This document shows positions 73 through 6,692 of a DNA stretch of 6,692 nucleotides, one piece after another. The stretch comes from Paramicrosporidium saccamoebae KSL3 (taxonomy: Eukaryota > Fungi > Cryptomycota), in contig MTSL01000153.1 in the NCBI GenBank assembly GCA_002794465.1, positions 5,461 through 12,152 on the forward strand, read 5' to 3'. How positions within the stretch are numbered: the first letter of the stretch is position 1; the number at the start of each line of letters is the position of its first letter. The translations under genes and the position numbers were made by a program. The notes beneath the pieces were generated by a model. The model was not told the DNA's origin and did not search any database. It saw only the letters and a program-made list of their open reading frames with translations.

Positions 73-1002
73 ATGGAGAAAGACTTTGATACAATTATAG
101 CTAACAGTACCTCTGAGACGCTGATAGTGAGGAGAGAGTTTAAAAGGGAGATTGCCATGGCCTTTGAATTCGACGATCCCGAAGGTAGAGATGAGGAAGA
201 GATTGGTGCTCTTGGGCATCTCGAGGGAATGGTGTTTGGTAAGTGCGCAAAGGACACCAAAGACACGTTGGAACGCATGGACAAGCTCGTGGAGAGCTTT
301 GAGGGCTGTGAGTTTGAGCCATCCTTAAGAACAAACGATGGAATGTTCAGCATTCTTAATTATGTTTACAAATATGGATTGATGGCTTTTCGATGCGGCA
401 AAGTGCCGGATGAGCCGTTCACTAAGGATGAGCTTCCTCGTCTTTTTACCCAAGAGGTTGTCCGTATAACCGGGATTAAAGTCCCAATAGAAGATGTGAG
501 TATTTGCTGGGATGTCCGAGTGAGCAAGCACCTTGATGACTACACAAGCCTACATGAGTATTTCCTGGATGATGGATTGCTGGGCTGGGACTATGAGCCA
601 AAGGCTCGCATCCCGGGACAACGCTGGAGGATAAATGTGTCTCAGGCATCGCATGAGATAAGTGCTGTCCTGTGGCGGATTAAAGCATTCAAGGAGGGCT
701 ATCTTACAGTTGAGGAGCGACTCACAAGGTGGGGCATTGTGATGCAAGTCGCTTCCAAGATCAAAGAGTTTCAGCGTGGCCACTTGGAGCGTCCAGGAGA
801 ATGGTGTCGTGTCCTTACTCTCCTCGACGTGTGCGAAGAGGACGTCCAGACTACGCTGGACTTTACCGCTGGGATGCACCTTCTTGATCCTGTCCATGAC
901 CTCATTCCGATCCGGGTCCTCGAGGTTATCACAGTGTTTCGGGTACTTTTCCGATTGTCATTGAGACAATTCGAGCTGGCGCATAGTGTCTCTGTAAAAT
1001 AA
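73..1002 (+). CDS. Family A protein, copy A1 (309 aa, function unknown)
   Basis: Long ATG-TAA ORF. It aligns along its whole length with the interrupted paralog at 3707-4678, with many synonymous differences. No known domain motif recognised. Confidence 0.9.
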   Translation: MEKDFDTIIANSTSETLIVRREFKREIAMAFEFDDPEGRDEEEIGALGHLEGMVFGKCAKDTKDTLERMDKLVESFEGCEFEPSLRTNDGMFSILNYVYKYGLMAFRCGKVPDEPFTKDELPRLFTQEVVRITGIKVPIEDVSICWDVRVSKHLDDYTSLHEYFLDDGLLGWDYEPKARIPGQRWRINVSQASHEISAVLWRIKAFKEGYLTVEERLTRWGIVMQVASKIKEFQRGHLERPGEWCRVLTLLDVCEEDVQTTLDFTAGMHLLDPVHDLIPIRVLEVITVFRVLFRLSLRQFELAHSVSVK

Positions 1003-1180
1003 TTTCAACTCCTCGTGGCCCCAATGTCAGCGCGTATAAAAATACAGAAATATCCATTACAATAAAAGTCTTGCCCATTCTAGAACTGTGGCACATATAG
1101 CATCAAGGAATCCGTTGGTTCATTATCCAGGCGGAATTTTCTCGACGCACAATATTTCCGGATTAGGCATATGGTGAAAG

Positions 1181-1187
1181 TATAAAA
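1181..1187 (+). promoter_or_regulatory. TATA-like element upstream of B1
   Basis: TATAAAA ends about 25 nt before the B1 ATG. TATTTAA sits at a similar distance before B2 (2167-2173) and B3 (5148-5154). Confidence 0.4.
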
Positions 1188-1211
1188 ATCGGCAAGAGAC
1201 TCGCGTAGGAG

Positions 1212-1775
1212 ATGGATACTCGTCGAGAGGAGGAGAGTCGCACAGACGTCGGAACAGGTCCACGTGTGTGGGTGATGTCATTTGACTCTGAGGACGCTGG
1301 TAGACCGCTATACGATGCTCAGAGTATACGAGGGGCAGTGAGGGATCTCTTGGTAAATCCAAGCATCGGGCTGGCAAGCCCAATGATCCCCAACAAATCA
1401 GCCAATGATATATCATACTCGGAAGATATTAGTATTATCGGTTCTCAACACGGAGTACTTGCGACAAGGACTGCATCTTTACCGAATGGGGTCATCGAAT
1501 CCGTGCTTCTAATCTGCGAAAAACTTGGCGTTCTGGAAATGGCGAACCAAAGAATGCCTGGATTATTTACAGAAGTTTCTGGGATTCAGAGGGAATCTAA
1601 ATTTGACAATATTGCCGCCAAGTTCAGGAAGTATAGGAACAGAATAGCCCATCCGGACCCCACTAGGATTAGCGAAGAAGACGTTGATCTCTCGGAGATT
1701 CCCAAAGCCTATAGGAGATTCGCGAAACTTCTTTTGCAATGGGACGCTTCACCATATCGAGGCGCTCCAAAGTAG
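1212..1775 (+). CDS. Family B protein, copy B1 (187 aa), putative HEPN-type RxxxxH ribonuclease
   Basis: Intact ORF with gapless alignment to B2 from PRVWV to WDASPY (about 50% identity). Contains FRKYRNRIAHP (R-N-x3-H) about 40 aa after an 'EKL' helix, followed by one more predicted helix, as in HEPN domains. Confidence 0.8.
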   Translation: MDTRREEESRTDVGTGPRVWVMSFDSEDAGRPLYDAQSIRGAVRDLLVNPSIGLASPMIPNKSANDISYSEDISIIGSQHGVLATRTASLPNGVIESVLLICEKLGVLEMANQRMPGLFTEVSGIQRESKFDNIAAKFRKYRNRIAHPDPTRISEEDVDLSEIPKAYRRFAKLLLQWDASPYRGAPK

Positions 1776-1854
1776 GCCTCCTCTCGCAATCATAGTAATT
1801 CGCATACGTAAAATAAGCAATTGAGTGAGCTGGGAGCCATCGCGACACGACTTC

Positions 1855-1998
1855 CTATTTGTTAGTCGCCTCTGATGTTACGAGATGTCCATTAAACTCT
1901 GTTAAACGGTGTTCGCCCGTGGTTGGCTGTTCCGATTCAGACAACGACCCAAAATCCATTCCTGTCTTGTCGAAGATAGCGGCCTGTAAGAATACCAT
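1855..1998 (-). CDS. Possible 47-aa micro-ORF divergent from B2 (MVFLQAAIFDKTGMDFGSLSESEQPTTGEHRLTEFNGHLVTSEATNK)
   Basis: ATG has A at -3 and G at +4. A matching ORF is open in the duplicate (4849-4977) with a few synonymous changes. It could be merely inherited non-coding sequence. Confidence 0.3.
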   Translation of the reverse strand: MVFLQAAIFDKTGMDFGSLSESEQPTTGEHRLTEFNGHLVTSEATNK

Positions 1999-2074
1999 AC
2001 TTTGATAAAAAATAATTTCGCTCTTTCGACAGACCCCCTATGATTCCCTAGACCGCACATATACTATCAGGCAA

Positions 2075-2141
2075 TAACAATATAATAATTGATTTCCCTC
2101 CAATATACCATATATGGGTTATTATGCGTCAACTTAGAGTC
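2075..2141 (+). promoter_or_regulatory. 67-nt identical non-coding block containing CArG-type palindrome CCATATATGG (2108-2117)
   Basis: Identical to 5055-5121 while the flanks and the coding sequences have diverged. CC(A/T)6GG is the established SRF/Mcm1 MADS-box site. Confidence 0.55.
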
Positions 2142-2200
2142 TATAATATTTGATAACGGGGGTGCATATTTAAGGCGAAGCACAAGCCACCGCGGACAGA

Positions 2201-2755
2201 ATGAGCGAGCTTCAGACACCGAGCCACCGTATTGAGTCACAACCTCGAGTTTGGGTCAAGGCCTTTGATGCGAAAAGCCGTGGGCGCTCACTGCACAGGG
2301 CACAAAGCATTGGCGATGCGGTAGACGACCTTATGGAAGATCCGACCATTGCTCTGGCCCTTCCCCTTCTTCATGACACACCGGCAGAAGAGATTGACTA
2401 CTTAGAAGACATCAGTGTCATCGGTTCTCAACAGGGGATGTTGGTCACTCTGGCTGCGACACTGCCTGATAGTGCCATCGCGACAGGGTTCTTGATTTAC
2501 GAGAAGCTATGCGTACTTAGGAAGGCGAGCGAAGAGAACCCTGATCTTTTTCAAAAAGTTCTTGGGATTCGAGAAAGGTCACGGTTTGACAATTTCTTTT
2601 TTCGATTTCGAGACCAAAGGAACAGGCTCGCCCATCCTACTCCCATTGGGGCCATTGAAGGAGACATTGACTTTAGAATGATCCGCGAAGAGCATAGACG
2701 CTACGCACGACTCTTGATTGAGTGGGATGCATCACCGTATCTAGGATACCGGTAG
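2201..2755 (+). CDS. Family B protein, copy B2 (184 aa), putative HEPN-type RxxxxH ribonuclease
   Basis: Intact ATG-TAG ORF containing FRDQRNRLAHP. About 79% identical to B3 (38 differences in 184 aa) and about 50% to B1. Confidence 0.85.
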   Translation: MSELQTPSHRIESQPRVWVKAFDAKSRGRSLHRAQSIGDAVDDLMEDPTIALALPLLHDTPAEEIDYLEDISVIGSQQGMLVTLAATLPDSAIATGFLIYEKLCVLRKASEENPDLFQKVLGIRERSRFDNFFFRFRDQRNRLAHPTPIGAIEGDIDFRMIREEHRRYARLLIEWDASPYLGYR

Positions 2756-2813
2756 GAAGCTCTTGTGTAGTAATTAGTGTTAATATATCCTGGGGATTTG
2801 TAAAAAAGGCGAC

Positions 2814-2958
2814 AAAGAGGACCGAGATCTTTACAGCTGCCTCTTTAAGCACACATAGCGTTTTATAGGCCAAATCCGACTTCAATGGTACTGATGTTAC
2901 TTGAACATTCAGCCTTTTCGGTCGGCGCATCCAGGCGAAACGGAGACTCCAGCATGAT
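2814..2958 (-). pseudogene. Inverted, internally deleted and frameshifted family B fragment
   Basis: Minus strand reads IMLESPFRLDAPTEKAECSSNISTI (cf. B3 IALALPLLHNIPTEEIDYSEDISTI, B1 IGLASP). After a deletion and frameshift near 2870 it reads LAYKTLCVLKEAAVKISVLF (cf. B2 LIYEKLCVLRKASEENPDLF, gapless). No RxxxxH is retained. Confidence 0.75.
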
Positions 2959-3706
2959 TCTCAGATAAAGTCAGACGTGCCGACCAAGGAAAAGTTTGGG
3001 CAGCCATTTAGCCCAATTATAAAGAAAGCTTTTGGTACATTGAAAAAAGATACTAATTACGTAATAATGGAGCCTTTGGGTATGAAAAGATACATGACGA
3101 ACACAAAAGCGAGGTTAGCCTTGCTTTCAAATTCTATATCGACTACTGCAAGCAATTGGCTTCATATAATGTTTTAATCCCAGCGGCAAATACTGGGACG
3201 AAATAGAGCGCCCGAGTCACTACCCAGTGTTCTTGTGATGGAATTGTCTATTATAGCGTTCCTTTGCAGACAGTAGTTATATGGAAGTTTACCAATATTA
3301 AAATTGGTCTCTCTAATTGGCATTGAAAGCATGGCTGTAGATCGGACACTCAGAATCGCAGCAGGCTCGAGCCATGCCCGTATAAAACGTATTGATTTTG
3401 ACAAGACTGCACGTAGTCTTATTGGCCGTAGTGCTATGGCATTTGTACATTCCCAAGTAATAAGTCATATGCTGTTAAGGGCAGGTCTGAAGTGTTGCTA
3501 TACCAACTATTCTTGAGAGTTGGGTGTTTCGTATTGTTGATTCTTATTGGCCCCCTGAAACTCGTTGCCCAGCCTCACTTTTAGGAGCCGTTAACGCCGC
3601 AAAAATACAATTACATCGATAGGACCAACATGAAACATGTGACAAAAGTTGAAAGTGTTGGTATTCGAAACACCATTGAGCCGAATATTAGAACGGGTAT
3701 AACATA

Positions 3707-4678
3707 ATGACGGAAGACATTGATACAATAATAGATTCTAGCAACGATGTGCGCAGAAGGGTAAAGGATGAATTCCTGAGAGAATCTTGTCTTATTTTCG
3801 ACTTTGAGATCAAAGCTCCCGAGGATGAAGATGCTGCTCTCGACAATTTGGAGCAGACCGTATTTAAAGCAAAGACTGAAAGCACAGATTGCATAGAGCG
3901 TGTGGCAAAACTCGTAGAGCATTATAAGGACTCGGAATTTGAGCAAGAACTAAGGTATCTCTAATATACTAGGTCTCAATAATGTAGAACTAAGGATGGA
4001 ATCTTCAGCCTTCTTTATTATGCCCATGGGTGGGGGGTGAAAGCTGTCCGTTGTGGTAGGCTACCCGACGACAAGCTTCCCAAGGATGAAATTTTGCATT
4101 GGATATCTGCAGAAGTTGCTCGAATCACTGGCATTAAAATGCCTTTAGAGGACGAAGAAATTTCATGGAACGTACGTACTCATCAAAAAGTTGAGGACTA
4201 CTCAAGCCCTCGCGAATATTTCCTCAACAACGGCTTGGTGCGATGGTACTATCTACCGAAGACTCGCATCCCCGGACAGCGCTGGAGGATGCTCATTTCT
4301 CAGGCTTCGCATGAAATTAGCGCTGTCATTCAGCGTATTAGAGCTTTCAAAGAGGGTTACCTTACGATTGAAGAACGTCTCACAAGGTGGGGCATTGTGA
4401 TGCAAGTCGCCTTCAAGATTAAAGAGTTCCAGCGTGGTTACTTGGGGCGTCCAGAGGAATGGAGTCGTGTCCTTACTCTCCTCGACGTGTGCGAAGAGGA
4501 CGTCCAGACTATGCTGGACTTTACCGCTGGGATGCATCTTCTTGATCCCGTCCATGATCTCATTCCAATCCGGGTCCTCGAGGTTATCACAGTGTTTCGG
4601 GTACTTTTCCGATTGTCATTGGGACAATTCGAGATGGCCTACGATTGCCACCTGCAGAATGAACGCCGCCACCTATAG
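3707..4678 (+). CDS. Family A protein, copy A2, two exons (3707-3954, 3988-4678; 312 aa if spliced)
   Basis: The track ORFs 3707-3964 and 4037-4678 are in the same frame. Removing 3955-3987 gives ...EFEQELR/TKDGIFSLLYYAHGWGVKAVRCG..., gapless against A1 ...EFEPSLRTNDGMFSILNYVYKYGLMAFRCG... Confidence 0.8.
3955..3987 (+). other. 33-nt GT-AG (spliceosomal-type) intron in A2, absent from A1
   Basis: AG|GTATCT...AATGTAG|A, about 30% GC, with two in-frame TAA stops. Excision at these boundaries restores colinearity with the intronless paralog exactly. Confidence 0.75.
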
Positions 4679-4848
4679 CGCCTCGACCATATATATATTT
4701 CTGAGATAGTAAATAGCGGACTGGGAGCCCAATAAAAGGGTCTGTTAGATAGTATCTGTCTACGGTTAGTGGTCCTGATCTAAAATGCTATTCCATAAAA
4801 TATGCTCACACTATTAACAGCGACGGTCTATAAAAGGTGCCACCGATT

Positions 4849-4977
4849 TTAATAAGTAGCTTCAGTTTCAACAGGGTATGTTAAATAGTGCTCGCCAGTA
4901 ATTGGTGGGCCCGATTCAGATAACGACCCACAATCCATTATTGTCTTGTCGAAGATAGCGGCCTGTAAGAATACCAT
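4849..4977 (-). CDS. Possible 42-aa micro-ORF divergent from B3 (MVFLQAAIFDKTIMDCGSLSESGPPITGEHYLTYPVETEATY)
   Basis: Counterpart of 1855-1998. The first 12 codons are identical and the alignment is gapless for 33 codons. Confidence 0.3.
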   Translation of the reverse strand: MVFLQAAIFDKTIMDCGSLSESGPPITGEHYLTYPVETEATY

Positions 4978-5054
4978 ACTTTAGTAAAACTAATTTCGCT
5001 CTTTCAACAGACCCTTTACTGAAACCCCTGGGCCGTATATATACTACCTAGCAG

Positions 5055-5121
5055 TAACAATATAATAATTGATTTCCCTCCAATATACCATATATGGGTT
5101 ATTATGCGTCAACTTAGAGTC
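5055..5121 (+). promoter_or_regulatory. Second copy of the 67-nt identical block with CCATATATGG (5088-5097)
   Basis: Identical to 2075-2141. Confidence 0.55.
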
Positions 5122-5181
5122 CATCAGATTTGATACCGGGGGGTGCATATTTAATGCGAAGCACAAGCCACTGCGGACACA

Positions 5182-5736
5182 GTGAGCGAACCTCAGACAC
5201 CAAGCCACCGTATTGAGTCAAGGCCTCGAGTCTGGGTCAAGGCCTTTGATGCGAAAATTCGTGGCCGCTTACTGCACAGGGCCCAGAGGATTGACGATGC
5301 AGTAAAGGATCTTATGGACGACCCGACCATTGCTCTAGCCCTTCCTCTTCTTCACAACATACCCACGGAAGAGATTGACTACTCGGAAGATATAAGCACT
5401 ATTGGTGCCCAACAAGGGATGCTGGTCACTCTGACCGCAGCACTGCCCGATAACGCCATCAATACTGGGTTTCTGGTATATGAGAAGCTATGCGTGCTTA
5501 GGAAGGCGAGCGACGAGGATCCAGAACTTTTTAGAAGAGTCCTTGGAATTCGAGACAAGGCTCGCTTTAACAATTTCTTTTTCCGATTTCGGGACCAAAG
5601 GAACAGGCTCGCCCATCCTACCCCCATCGCGGCTGTTGGTGGAGACATTGACTTTGGAATGATAAACGAAGAGCACTGGCAATACGCACGACTCTTGATC
5701 GAGCGGGATGCGTCACGACGTTTAGGATACCGGTAG
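5182..5736 (+). CDS. Family B protein, copy B3 (184 codons from GTG), putative HEPN-type RNase, possibly decaying
   Basis: Open frame with RNRLAH intact. GTG lies at the position of the B2 ATG, and the WDASPY shared by B1 and B2 is changed to RDASRR. Confidence 0.65.
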   Translation: MSEPQTPSHRIESRPRVWVKAFDAKIRGRLLHRAQRIDDAVKDLMDDPTIALALPLLHNIPTEEIDYSEDISTIGAQQGMLVTLTAALPDNAINTGFLVYEKLCVLRKASDEDPELFRRVLGIRDKARFNNFFFRFRDQRNRLAHPTPIAAVGGDIDFGMINEEHWQYARLLIERDASRRLGYR

Positions 5737-5759
5737 GAAGCTCTTGTGAAACGATTGCG

Positions 5760-5964
5760 GAAATTTCCAGCCAGTGCATCTATATGCACAGAGTAAAGAT
5801 CGACATTCCCTTTACTGGCTTTAAATGTCATATCTTCGAGCTACCCGAGAATATAACCCTTCTCATCAAACTCAAATACAAGGCTCAAGTGGATAAGGTA
5901 CTCGATCGCATTGTCAAGCGCTTTATAATTTTTATCATGGGATTATAATGGTGAGTTAAAAGTC
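5760..5964 (-). pseudogene. Inverted decayed N-terminal fragment of family A
   Basis: Minus strand reads EYLIHLSLVFEFDEKGYILG*LEDMTFKASK...HIDALAGNF versus A1 EFKREIAMAFEFD...ALGHLEGMVFGKCAK...RMDKLVESF and A2 EFLRESCLIFDFE...ALDNLEQTVFKAK. There is a TAG at 5841-5843, and a frameshifted DF*LTII (cf. A1 DFDTII) near 5964-5944. Confidence 0.6.
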
Positions 5965-6047
5965 TTAATGACGCGAGAGCGTCCGCCAATCTGTGGTATA
6001 AGAATGATGATTTAACAAAAGCCAGCAAAGAGCCATTATAATAGTCA

Positions 6048-6113
6048 CCAATACTCGAGTCTGAAATGATGGTCCTATCTAAATGCGACTAGCATTTCAG
6101 ACTCGAGTATTGG
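6048..6113. repeat. Perfect 21-bp inverted repeat with 24-nt spacer
   Basis: ccaatactcgagtctgaaatg (6048-6068) is the exact reverse complement of catttcagactcgagtattgg (6093-6113). Confidence 0.95.
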
Positions 6114-6144
6114 GATGGTAACTACAATTAAACGTTAGAAAACA

Positions 6145-6692
6145 CTATCCCCCAATAATGACTGGCCAGCGCCTACCCGAGTACATGTTCAGTGCACGTT
6201 CAACGCAGTCTCGTCGAGTTTCCTGGTCAAATTTTCCGTCCTTCCAAAGGAAGCGCACCAAACTGACCAGCTTCACGTTGCAGAATTCCCTGAAGAATTT
6301 CCACAACATGGCGTTCTCGACGAACTACTCCCTGCGATCTCGGTAGAGTCAACAAGGAGCAGTAGAATGGCACGCTTGGCAAAATCCCTGCTATTTCTAA
6401 CAGTGATGCCGCGAGAACACTCGGCTTCAAACTCGACGCGTCTCAGCCGTTGACTTTGAGGTGGATGACTCGAGGCCACAGACTGCAGGGTCGACAGGGG
6501 CAGGTGGTGGACATGCGCCGTGTCGATTCCTCCATAGCGGTGAATGGCAATCTATGAAAGTGAATATAACTGACAAGCGACATACCGACAAGAGACGTGG
6601 AAAGGTCGTTGTCTCGTCCCATGTGCCGTCTGGGCACATGTCAGCGCACTGCCGTGCAAGCTTCCGCTTCCGGTGGTACCTCCAGCCGTACC
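6145..6692 (-). CDS. Probable 3' part of a spliced gene of unknown function, truncated by the window edge; exon structure only partly resolved
   Basis: GC-richer segment. An open frame from the edge (YGWRYHRKRKLARQCADMCPDGTWDETTTFPRLLS) joins across a 34-nt intron to IAIHRYGGIDTAHV...RVEFEAECSRGI... A protein-like terminal frame at 6324-6145 (FVENAMLWKFFREF...RRWPVIIGG*) ends where GC drops. The junction into this last frame is not resolved. Confidence 0.4.
6552..6585 (-). other. 34-nt GT-AG intron
   Basis: Minus strand GTATGT...TATTCACTTTCATAG: consensus donor, pyrimidine-rich 3' end, about 35% GC within GC-richer flanks. Confidence 0.6.

Follow-up and report, generated by a model that had tools for sequence, protein, structure and literature searches.

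The window analysed here is a stretch of 6,692 nucleotides (nt) that corresponds to positions 5461-12152 of contig MTSL01000153.1 (22,046 nt) in assembly GCA_002794465.1 of Paramicrosporidium saccamoebae, an obligate intranuclear parasite of amoebae belonging to the Rozellomycota (PMC5701793). It contains five genes of two families, here called A and B, in the order A1, B1, B2, A2 and B3, together with a borderline inverted B remnant and a weak inverted A remnant, and we present the evidence that these families may form a linked module of a nuclease and its partner. An initial annotation made from the letters of the window had named these seven elements, all of which we recovered in place:

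73-1002, plus strand: A1, an intact, uninterrupted open reading frame of 309 amino acids (aa), intronless and acidic, with an isoelectric point (pI) of 5.1
1212-1775, plus strand: B1, 187 aa, with an N-terminal domain and a HEPN-like C-terminal half that carries R-N-R-I-A-H-P
2201-2755, plus strand: B2, 184 aa, with R140-N141-R-L-A144-H145-P146; annotated in the assembly
2958-2814, minus strand: inverted B remnant covering about residues 50-117, frameshifted and without the RNxxAH motif
3707-3954, plus strand: exon 1 of A2, the acidic N-terminal region
3955-3987, plus strand: intron of A2, 33 nt, GT..AG, with in-frame stops, at the site common to the 29-34-nt introns of other A copies
3988-4678, plus strand: exon 2 of A2, with similarity to A1
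5182-5736, plus strand: B3, 184 aa, 79% identical to B2 in aa sequence; the assembly annotation begins at Met45 and gives a product of 140 aa (P0002)
5903-5751, minus strand: inverted A remnant, exon 1 only, containing a stop

A1 and A2 share 59-62% aa identity (tblastn E-value, E, 4e-119), and removal of the 33-nt intron restores the alignment of A2 to A1 across the junction, giving a product of 312 aa. The 29-34-nt intron lies at one fixed position in nearly all A copies, and as most of its lengths are not divisible by three, it must be spliced out; the initial annotation's picture of a eukaryote with tiny introns agrees with both the host and this structure. A1 and the copy at 3001-3912 of the same contig lack the family intron, a case of intron loss within a tandem family. 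Among the B genes, B2 and B3 are the closest pair (tblastn E 1e-88), followed by B1 and B2 (E 2e-53, 49% aa identity), and B1 has 73% aa identity to the B gene of a metagenome locus (L009). B3 has GTG in place of the ATG of B2 and a W175R substitution at a near-invariant tryptophan, for which reasons it may be decaying; its catalytic-type motif is intact. The two families are unrelated to each other (hhalign probability 0.3%).

The inverted remnants are less clear. That of B is made up of two collinear pieces lying in different frames (summed E 0.004, first piece by itself 0.05, overall range 0.004-0.06) and was missed by the hidden Markov model (HMM) of the B family; clearer inverted B fragments at the corresponding place, directly 3' of intact B genes in L005, L006 and L012, support its position. 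That of A was detected by the family exon-1 HMM with a domain E of 7e-5 (12 bits).

The window forms the central part of a larger array. The whole contig (L001) carries seven A copies and three B copies, and its A genes, all on the plus strand, start at 3001, 4316, 5533 (A1), 9167 (A2), 12888, 14300 and 15534, with premature stops in those at 3001 and 12888. From left to right, the order is C(-), psiA, A, A1, B1, B2, psiB(-), A2, B3, psiA(-), hairpin, psiC(-), psiA, A, A, followed by a MutS/HisRS gene, where C is a third gene that borders the array. A second cluster lies on contig MTSL01000025.1 (L003; other L numbers denote loci of relatives). It has roughly nine copies of A, distributed over both strands, together with a single full-length B, a partial B fragment and two 109-aa 'short B' genes, both intact. 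The initial annotation had described each intact A as being followed by B on the same strand, which holds within the window alone and is an effect of its boundaries, because runs of A-A-A lie on either side of it. Its description of two unrecognised families in birth-and-death evolution was borne out by the pseudogenes, fragments, segmental duplication and gene conversion present here. A 124-nt fragment at L001 4107-4230 is 95% identical to the A1 promoter region and first 18 codons (start at 4177). The sequence upstream of the next A copy follows it immediately, and the junction marks a breakpoint of recombination or duplication.

At both clusters, the A copies are absent from the gene calls of GCA_002794465.1 (L001 3001-6459 and 12888-16482; L003 5702-7801 and 12277-20900), even though several are intact, and we found no NCBI-sourced A protein. 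In the published annotation of this genome, a RepeatScout library was masked beforehand (PMC5701793), and masking of the A family as a repeat by this de novo library is the likely reason for its absence.

Next to the clusters of P. saccamoebae itself, where A and B are tightly linked both in the window and on the second contig, we examined loci of relatives on metagenome and Logan contigs, the first six distinct ones being reached from three B and three A proteins. In all six, A and B are adjacent on the same strand, 180-820 nt apart, with the arrangements B-A-choline kinase; GPN GTPase-B-psiB(-)-A-DJ-1; C(-)-A-B; A-B-A-B; A-B-psiB(-); and Bfrag-B-A. A seventh locus (L013) has an A pseudogene containing a B fragment, adjoining an intact A; this pseudogene (L013 426-1345) has a C-terminal B fragment (residues ~134-186) inserted mid-gene. 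Counting all eight related loci, A and B material occurs together in seven and an intact-looking, adjacent, same-strand pair in six, and the A:B ratio across relatives' contigs is roughly 1:1. The initial annotation had named unlinked A and B homologues in other genomes as a refutation; this did not apply, as the two are physically linked there, but its A-then-B unit needs correction, as B-then-A is equally frequent at the single-pair loci of relatives. The pair has therefore stayed linked at several unrelated sites between different housekeeping genes, whichever of the two comes first. Among A copies, distances also correlate with those of the B genes next downstream (Mantel r 0.73, p 0.03, n=6); the correlation is weak, and duplication as a unit would give the same result. 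Both families are restricted to Paramicrosporidium and close relatives.

We then considered what B might encode. The HEPN superfamily of RNases is marked by an Rx4-6H motif, a polar residue (N, D or H) after the arginine, an upstream acidic residue, typically within E-x3-[KR] in helix 2, and frequent inserts between helices 2 and 3 (PMC3710099). In an alignment of 22 B members with 30% mean column identity, I71, G79, K102, R140, N141, A144 and P146 are invariant, and H145, E101 and W175 are conserved in at least 90%; H145 is kept in 21 of the 22, so that the R-x4-H spacing and the polar residue after R, the invariant N141, are both present, and B1, B2 and B3 all carry R-N-R-L/I-A-H. In a low-confidence AlphaFold2 model of B, helices span residues 90-112, 116-121, 126-142 and 163-174, with R140-N141 at the end of the third, and E101 and K102 lie in the long helix 90-112 as an E-K pair rather than the typical E-x3-[KR]. 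The modelled motif would thus lie where the superfamily survey places Rx4-6H, at a helix end followed by a loop and the last helix (PMC3710099).

Sub-threshold Pfam matches of B members point in the same direction. Eleven of 14 are to HEPN families, namely Swt1 (five), Apea (two), RiboL-PSP (two), DUF4145 (one) and Abi_2 (one); Swt1, Apea, DUF4145 and Abi2 are HEPN families in the survey (PMC3710099), and RiboL-PSP is counted as HEPN through its Pfam family name. B1 itself has weak matches to HEPN_RiboL-PSP and HEPN_Apea, while the family consensus matches only HEPN_Swt1 and HEPN_Cthe2314, again below threshold, which brings the number of HEPN families to six. As a control, none of the eight weak Pfam matches of 29 A members is to HEPN. 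Taken together, we consider it probable, short of proof, that the C-terminal half of B is a HEPN-type domain.

The N-terminal ~90 residues of B form a separate, family-specific domain of unknown fold, which also occurs alone in proteins of 103-109 aa (P0051, P0053 and P0054) that are conserved between P. saccamoebae and metagenome relatives. The two intact short B genes of the second cluster (L003 11291-11620 and 18167-18496, both on the minus strand) consist solely of this domain, and the invariant glycine of its D-I-S-x-I-G motif is replaced in them. The N-termini of several B members are basic and resemble nuclear localisation signals. When 1.8 billion representative proteins were searched exhaustively with the B profile (HMMER), 33 proteins were returned, all close family members and none of them a bridge to known HEPN families; B has no match above threshold in Pfam, NCBIfam or PADLOC, and a tblastn search of plasmids with the B consensus gave no match. 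Two scans of metagenome collections and one viral scan were likewise empty.

These data also bear on a reading in which B is a non-toxic RNA-binding or RNA-processing factor, either HEPN-like, as the inactive HEPN of Swt1 may be, or built on an unrelated helical domain, with A an unrelated lineage-specific protein and the array an ordinary tandem expansion that has no conflict function. Its strengths are that HEPN membership is below threshold, that the best weak matches are to the Swt1-like HEPN, possibly inactive in Swt1 itself (PMC3710099), and that purifying selection is strong, with no dN/dS (the ratio of nonsynonymous to synonymous substitution rates) exceeding 1. Yet R, N and H are essentially invariant in 22 diverged B members, though inactive HEPN domains usually lose the R...H motif (PMC3710099), and pseudogenes, fragments, inverted partial copies and paired dispersal characterise conflict genes more than they do housekeeping genes. 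We regard this reading as unlikely.

The A proteins, by comparison with the basic C-terminal half of B (pI 9.0-9.4), are uniformly acidic (median pI 5.1, n=21). In the 86 N-terminal residues, and in the segment encoded by exon 1, the net charge is -11 to -12 and a motif of the F-E-F-D-D-F-E-E type is conserved. An AlphaFold2 model computed for A1 (predicted local distance difference test, pLDDT, 79; predicted template modelling score 0.82) starts with helices, continues with a beta-alpha-beta unit over residues ~88-175 and ends in a bundle of six helices (194-308), where pLDDT exceeds 90. The best Foldseek matches of residues ~88-175 are ubiquitin, SUMO and ISG15, all weak (E 0.1-0.3; template modelling score 0.45-0.49 on the target), and the whole protein has no fold match in the PDB or the viral BFVD. 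Searches of Pfam, NCBIfam, PADLOC and PDB sequence profiles with A returned nothing significant. The 36 relatives of A all come from two JGI metagenomes (3300042203 and 3300042204) and one Logan run, and profile searches gave no distant ones. Two candidate assignments for A were rejected: as a minimal nucleotidyltransferase, the classical HEPN partner, its G-I...D stretch does not show the conserved G-S...D-x-D pattern, and a different fold is predicted; as a protein with its own HEPN motif at R186...H194, the spacing is x7, the histidine varies, and the family profile does not resemble that of B.

Pairwise comparison of the copies gave dN/dS values of 0.23 (A1/A2), 0.11 (A2 against the copy at 4316), 0.16 (14300 against 15534) and 0.18 (B2/B3), with an overall range of 0.09-0.23 for A, no region above 0.25, and synonymous divergence (dS) from 0.5 to above 1. 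By these measures, A and B are old paralogues under purifying selection. A1 and A2 are 90-97% identical in nucleotide sequence over 240 nt near the 3' end and 40-60% identical in the 5' half, a contrast that indicates gene conversion. Direct DNA repeats at 1900-2457 and 4879-5438 (84-90% identical) extend from upstream of B2 and B3 into these genes, with the following upstream parts:

1900-2200, plus strand: upstream region of B2, duplicated at 4879-5181
4879-5181, plus strand: upstream region of B3, a copy of 1900-2200

Over 250 nt, the upstream regions of B2 and B3 have a mean identity of ~88%, which exceeds that of the coding sequence; most 60-nt windows reach 90-93%, and one is at 77%. As synonymous sites differ by 43%, the upstream region appears to be either constrained or converted.

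This age and mode of evolution argue against a further reading, in which A and B are cargo or machinery of a repetitive mobile element, with A being repeat-encoded and hence masked. Such an element would fit the missing gene calls at both clusters after use of a RepeatScout library, the pairs at several unrelated sites and a conserved hairpin element near the genes. However, the old copies under purifying selection resemble ordinary cellular paralogues, a conserved spliceosomal intron is present, neither A nor B gives any signal of a transposase, integrase or reverse transcriptase, units are not flanked by terminal repeats, and A has no viral relatives. A mobile element is, in our judgement, very improbable.

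Our preferred reading, which we hold tentatively, is of a conflict module in which B is an RNase effector of the HEPN type and A the linked protein that inhibits or controls it. Through its basic C-terminal half, predicted to be all-helical and carrying R-N-x-x-A-H, B would act as a metal-independent endoribonuclease effector, and the acidic A, composed of an acidic N-terminus, a predicted ubiquitin-like beta-grasp and a six-helix C-terminal bundle, would bind B and restrain or gate it, in keeping with the complementary charges of the two proteins. The module would have spread as a pair to several genomic sites and then been amplified locally, and it is this dispersal of the pair combined with local amplification that suggests a conflict gene, either a toxin-antidote or selfish element or an immune effector with its sensor.

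Several observations weigh against this reading. A main weakness is the unequal gene number, which would be surprising in a strict toxin-antidote pair: taken together, both clusters of P. saccamoebae hold about 16 A copies and four full-length B copies, with A-A-A runs, so the 1:1 pairing implied by the initial annotation does not extend to them. At the eighth related locus (L014), B occurs without A within 1.3 kb upstream, on a contig that ends 326 nt downstream. Adjacency could have been inherited through duplication of an ancestral two-gene segment, without functional coupling. The proposed role of A derives from its position and charge, as it has no detectable relative or fold match, and pairwise dN/dS gave no sign of diversifying selection, including in the acidic N-terminus. 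For B, no HEPN profile matched at its curated cut-off (best E 0.019, 12-14 bits against 24-28), no HEPN was returned by PDB-sequence profile searches with the full protein or its C-terminal half, and the structural model, built from only five sequences, has a mean pLDDT of 56.6 (70-84 in helices, 45 in the loop); Foldseek with this low-confidence model gave nothing in the PDB with E below 1, because the model is poor. The assignment of B as a HEPN RNase in the initial annotation is partly supported: it fits the motif, the site at which the model places it and the weak Pfam matches that converge on HEPN families, but no profile match reaches its cut-off and the model is too poor for a comparison of folds.

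The excess of A over B suits independent families better than cognate pairs, and hence also a reading in which two parasite-specific, co-amplified families act on the host amoeba with no mutual regulation, for example B as an RNase and A as another factor delivered into the host nucleus; they would be adjacent because they are regulated together or were duplicated together. In favour of this, P. saccamoebae lives as an obligate intranuclear parasite (PMC5701793), both families are lineage-restricted, multi-copy and clustered, their old paralogues are kept by purifying selection, and the nuclear-localisation-like N-termini of several B members would also fit. On the other hand, no signal peptide was evident by eye in A or B (no secretion predictor was applied), and the pairs remain adjacent at single-pair loci between different housekeeping genes, which is unexpected for unrelated effectors. 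We rate host-directed effectors as somewhat unlikely, and consider the nuclease-controller module further below.

Within the conflict-module reading, a drive-type role is possible but unsupported; it is conceivable because P. saccamoebae is diploid and has a complete meiotic gene set. An elaborated version would be a three-layer toxin-antidote cassette, in which the HEPN RNase B and the acidic, new-fold A are joined by motif-less B copies as a second level of control. Stand-alone short B proteins would form dead heterodimers, or inverted partial B copies located 3' of B would give rise to hairpin RNA, and the cassette would spread as a selfish element or a kin-discrimination system in a diploid, meiosis-capable intranuclear parasite. 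Inverted partial copies of this kind directly follow the 3' end of an intact B at three separate loci, L012, L005 and the window. In L012, the inverted B arms (2115-2360 / 2543-2788) are 246 nt long and 87% complementary; in L005 (1998-2108 / 2626-2736), they are 111 nt long and 75% complementary. If co-transcribed with the intact gene, such inverted copies would form a long hairpin RNA. The inverted copy in the window is decayed, and no inverted B copy includes the RNxxAH motif. This cassette we consider distinctly unlikely.

Two further features lie at the right end of the window:

6048-6113, no strand assigned: hairpin with 27-nt arms, inside a 180-nt element (about 6002-6182)
6178-6692, minus strand: psiC, a partial, frameshifted duplicate of C

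Gene C, at the left border of the array (contig MTSL01000153.1 947-2234, minus strand), encodes a 359-aa protein with three N-terminal transmembrane helices and no Pfam match. Its partial duplicate psiC, with 89-94% nucleotide identity, forms the last 515 nt of the window, and the array therefore grew partly by large segmental duplication. C-like N-termini also adjoin A and B genes in two relatives' loci (L007 2-118, minus strand; L014 825-1028). The arms of the hairpin are 93% complementary, with an RNA minimum free energy of -45.9 kcal/mol (z -9), and its 180-nt element recurs at L003 11036-11212 and 18021-18089, each time just 3' of a 109-aa short B gene, with one compensatory base-pair change from T-A to C-G. 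Rfam and transfer RNA scans of the window gave only a sub-threshold, microRNA-like match, located on this hairpin. A 21-nt motif (GCACATATA..ATCA.G.AAT) is shared by 1091-1111 and 2055-2075 of the window, where it precedes B1 and B2 by 120-150 nt; a looser copy precedes B3. It may be a promoter element. A scan of the window for promoters and terminators showed no enrichment, the scan models being bacterial and the host eukaryotic.

Compared with known systems, B is most reminiscent of the Abi2/Swt1-like clade of HEPN RNases (PMC3710099), with which it shares R-x4-H with N after R, a conserved acidic residue upstream and a small, basic domain that is predicted to be all-helical; in the low-confidence model, the motif would also lie at a helix end followed by a loop and the last helix, and its weak Pfam matches converge on HEPN families. 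It differs in having no significant profile or structure match, in the E-K pair in place of E-x3-[KR], and in its ~90-residue N-terminal domain that also stands alone. As an arrangement of two genes, the A-B module would work most like the bacterial HEPN toxin-antitoxin dyads, prokaryotic examples of two-gene HEPN modules being HEPN-MNT, RnlA-RnlB and MAE_18760-ParA (PMC3710099). Like these, it combines a small, putatively HEPN-type protein with one linked, same-strand partner at many genomic sites, and pairs an acidic partner with a basic, putative nuclease half. Unlike them, it resides in a eukaryotic host, as separate genes with an intron and no operon, its gene order is variable and its gene numbers unequal, and A is not a nucleotidyltransferase, an ATPase or a member of a known antitoxin family.

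Lineage-specific HEPN expansions typical of defence genes have been described in eukaryotes, including 46 Swt1-like copies in Daphnia, paREP1/8 in Caenorhabditis and KEN in Oikopleura (PMC3710099). The eukaryotic Swt1-like (Ava_2192-type) copies of that survey are solos (PMC3710099), whereas here the expansion is of a two-family module with a fixed partner. The likeness lies in a gene, here of putative HEPN type, multiplied independently in one eukaryotic lineage. Toxin-antidote or drive loci of eukaryotes include wtf in fission yeast, Spok in Podospora and peel-1/zeel-1 in C. elegans, and in wtf and Spok, poison and antidote come from one gene. The array described here resembles them as a multi-copy, fast-turnover locus with intact, diverged and decayed copies; no sequence or fold relation to A or B is known for them. 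The large gene families InterB and NemLGF of Microsporidia are single-family expansions, often with signal peptides, and share with A and B a clustered, lineage-restricted, multi-copy organisation in reduced parasite genomes, as opposed to the two unrelated, interleaved families seen here. In the literature searched, we found no HEPN linked to Rozellomycota or to eukaryotic toxin-antidote elements, and co-mentions of HEPN and microsporidia occurred only outside titles and abstracts. The A-B module differs from the bacterial dyads and the known HEPN expansions in its eukaryotic host, a partner of unknown family and fold, and the stand-alone paralogue of the N-terminal domain.

The Rozellomycota lie at the base of Fungi and Microsporidia, and to our knowledge nothing is known of intragenomic conflict or immunity in this group. 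The whole A family, with 16 or more copies, is absent from the gene calls of the organism's only public genome and has therefore been invisible to comparative gene-content analyses of the clade so far. Should B prove to be an active HEPN RNase under the control of A, P. saccamoebae would possess a eukaryotic two-gene module of nuclease and partner that is built like the toxin-antitoxin pairs of bacteria, and its partner A would come from a previously unseen family and fold.

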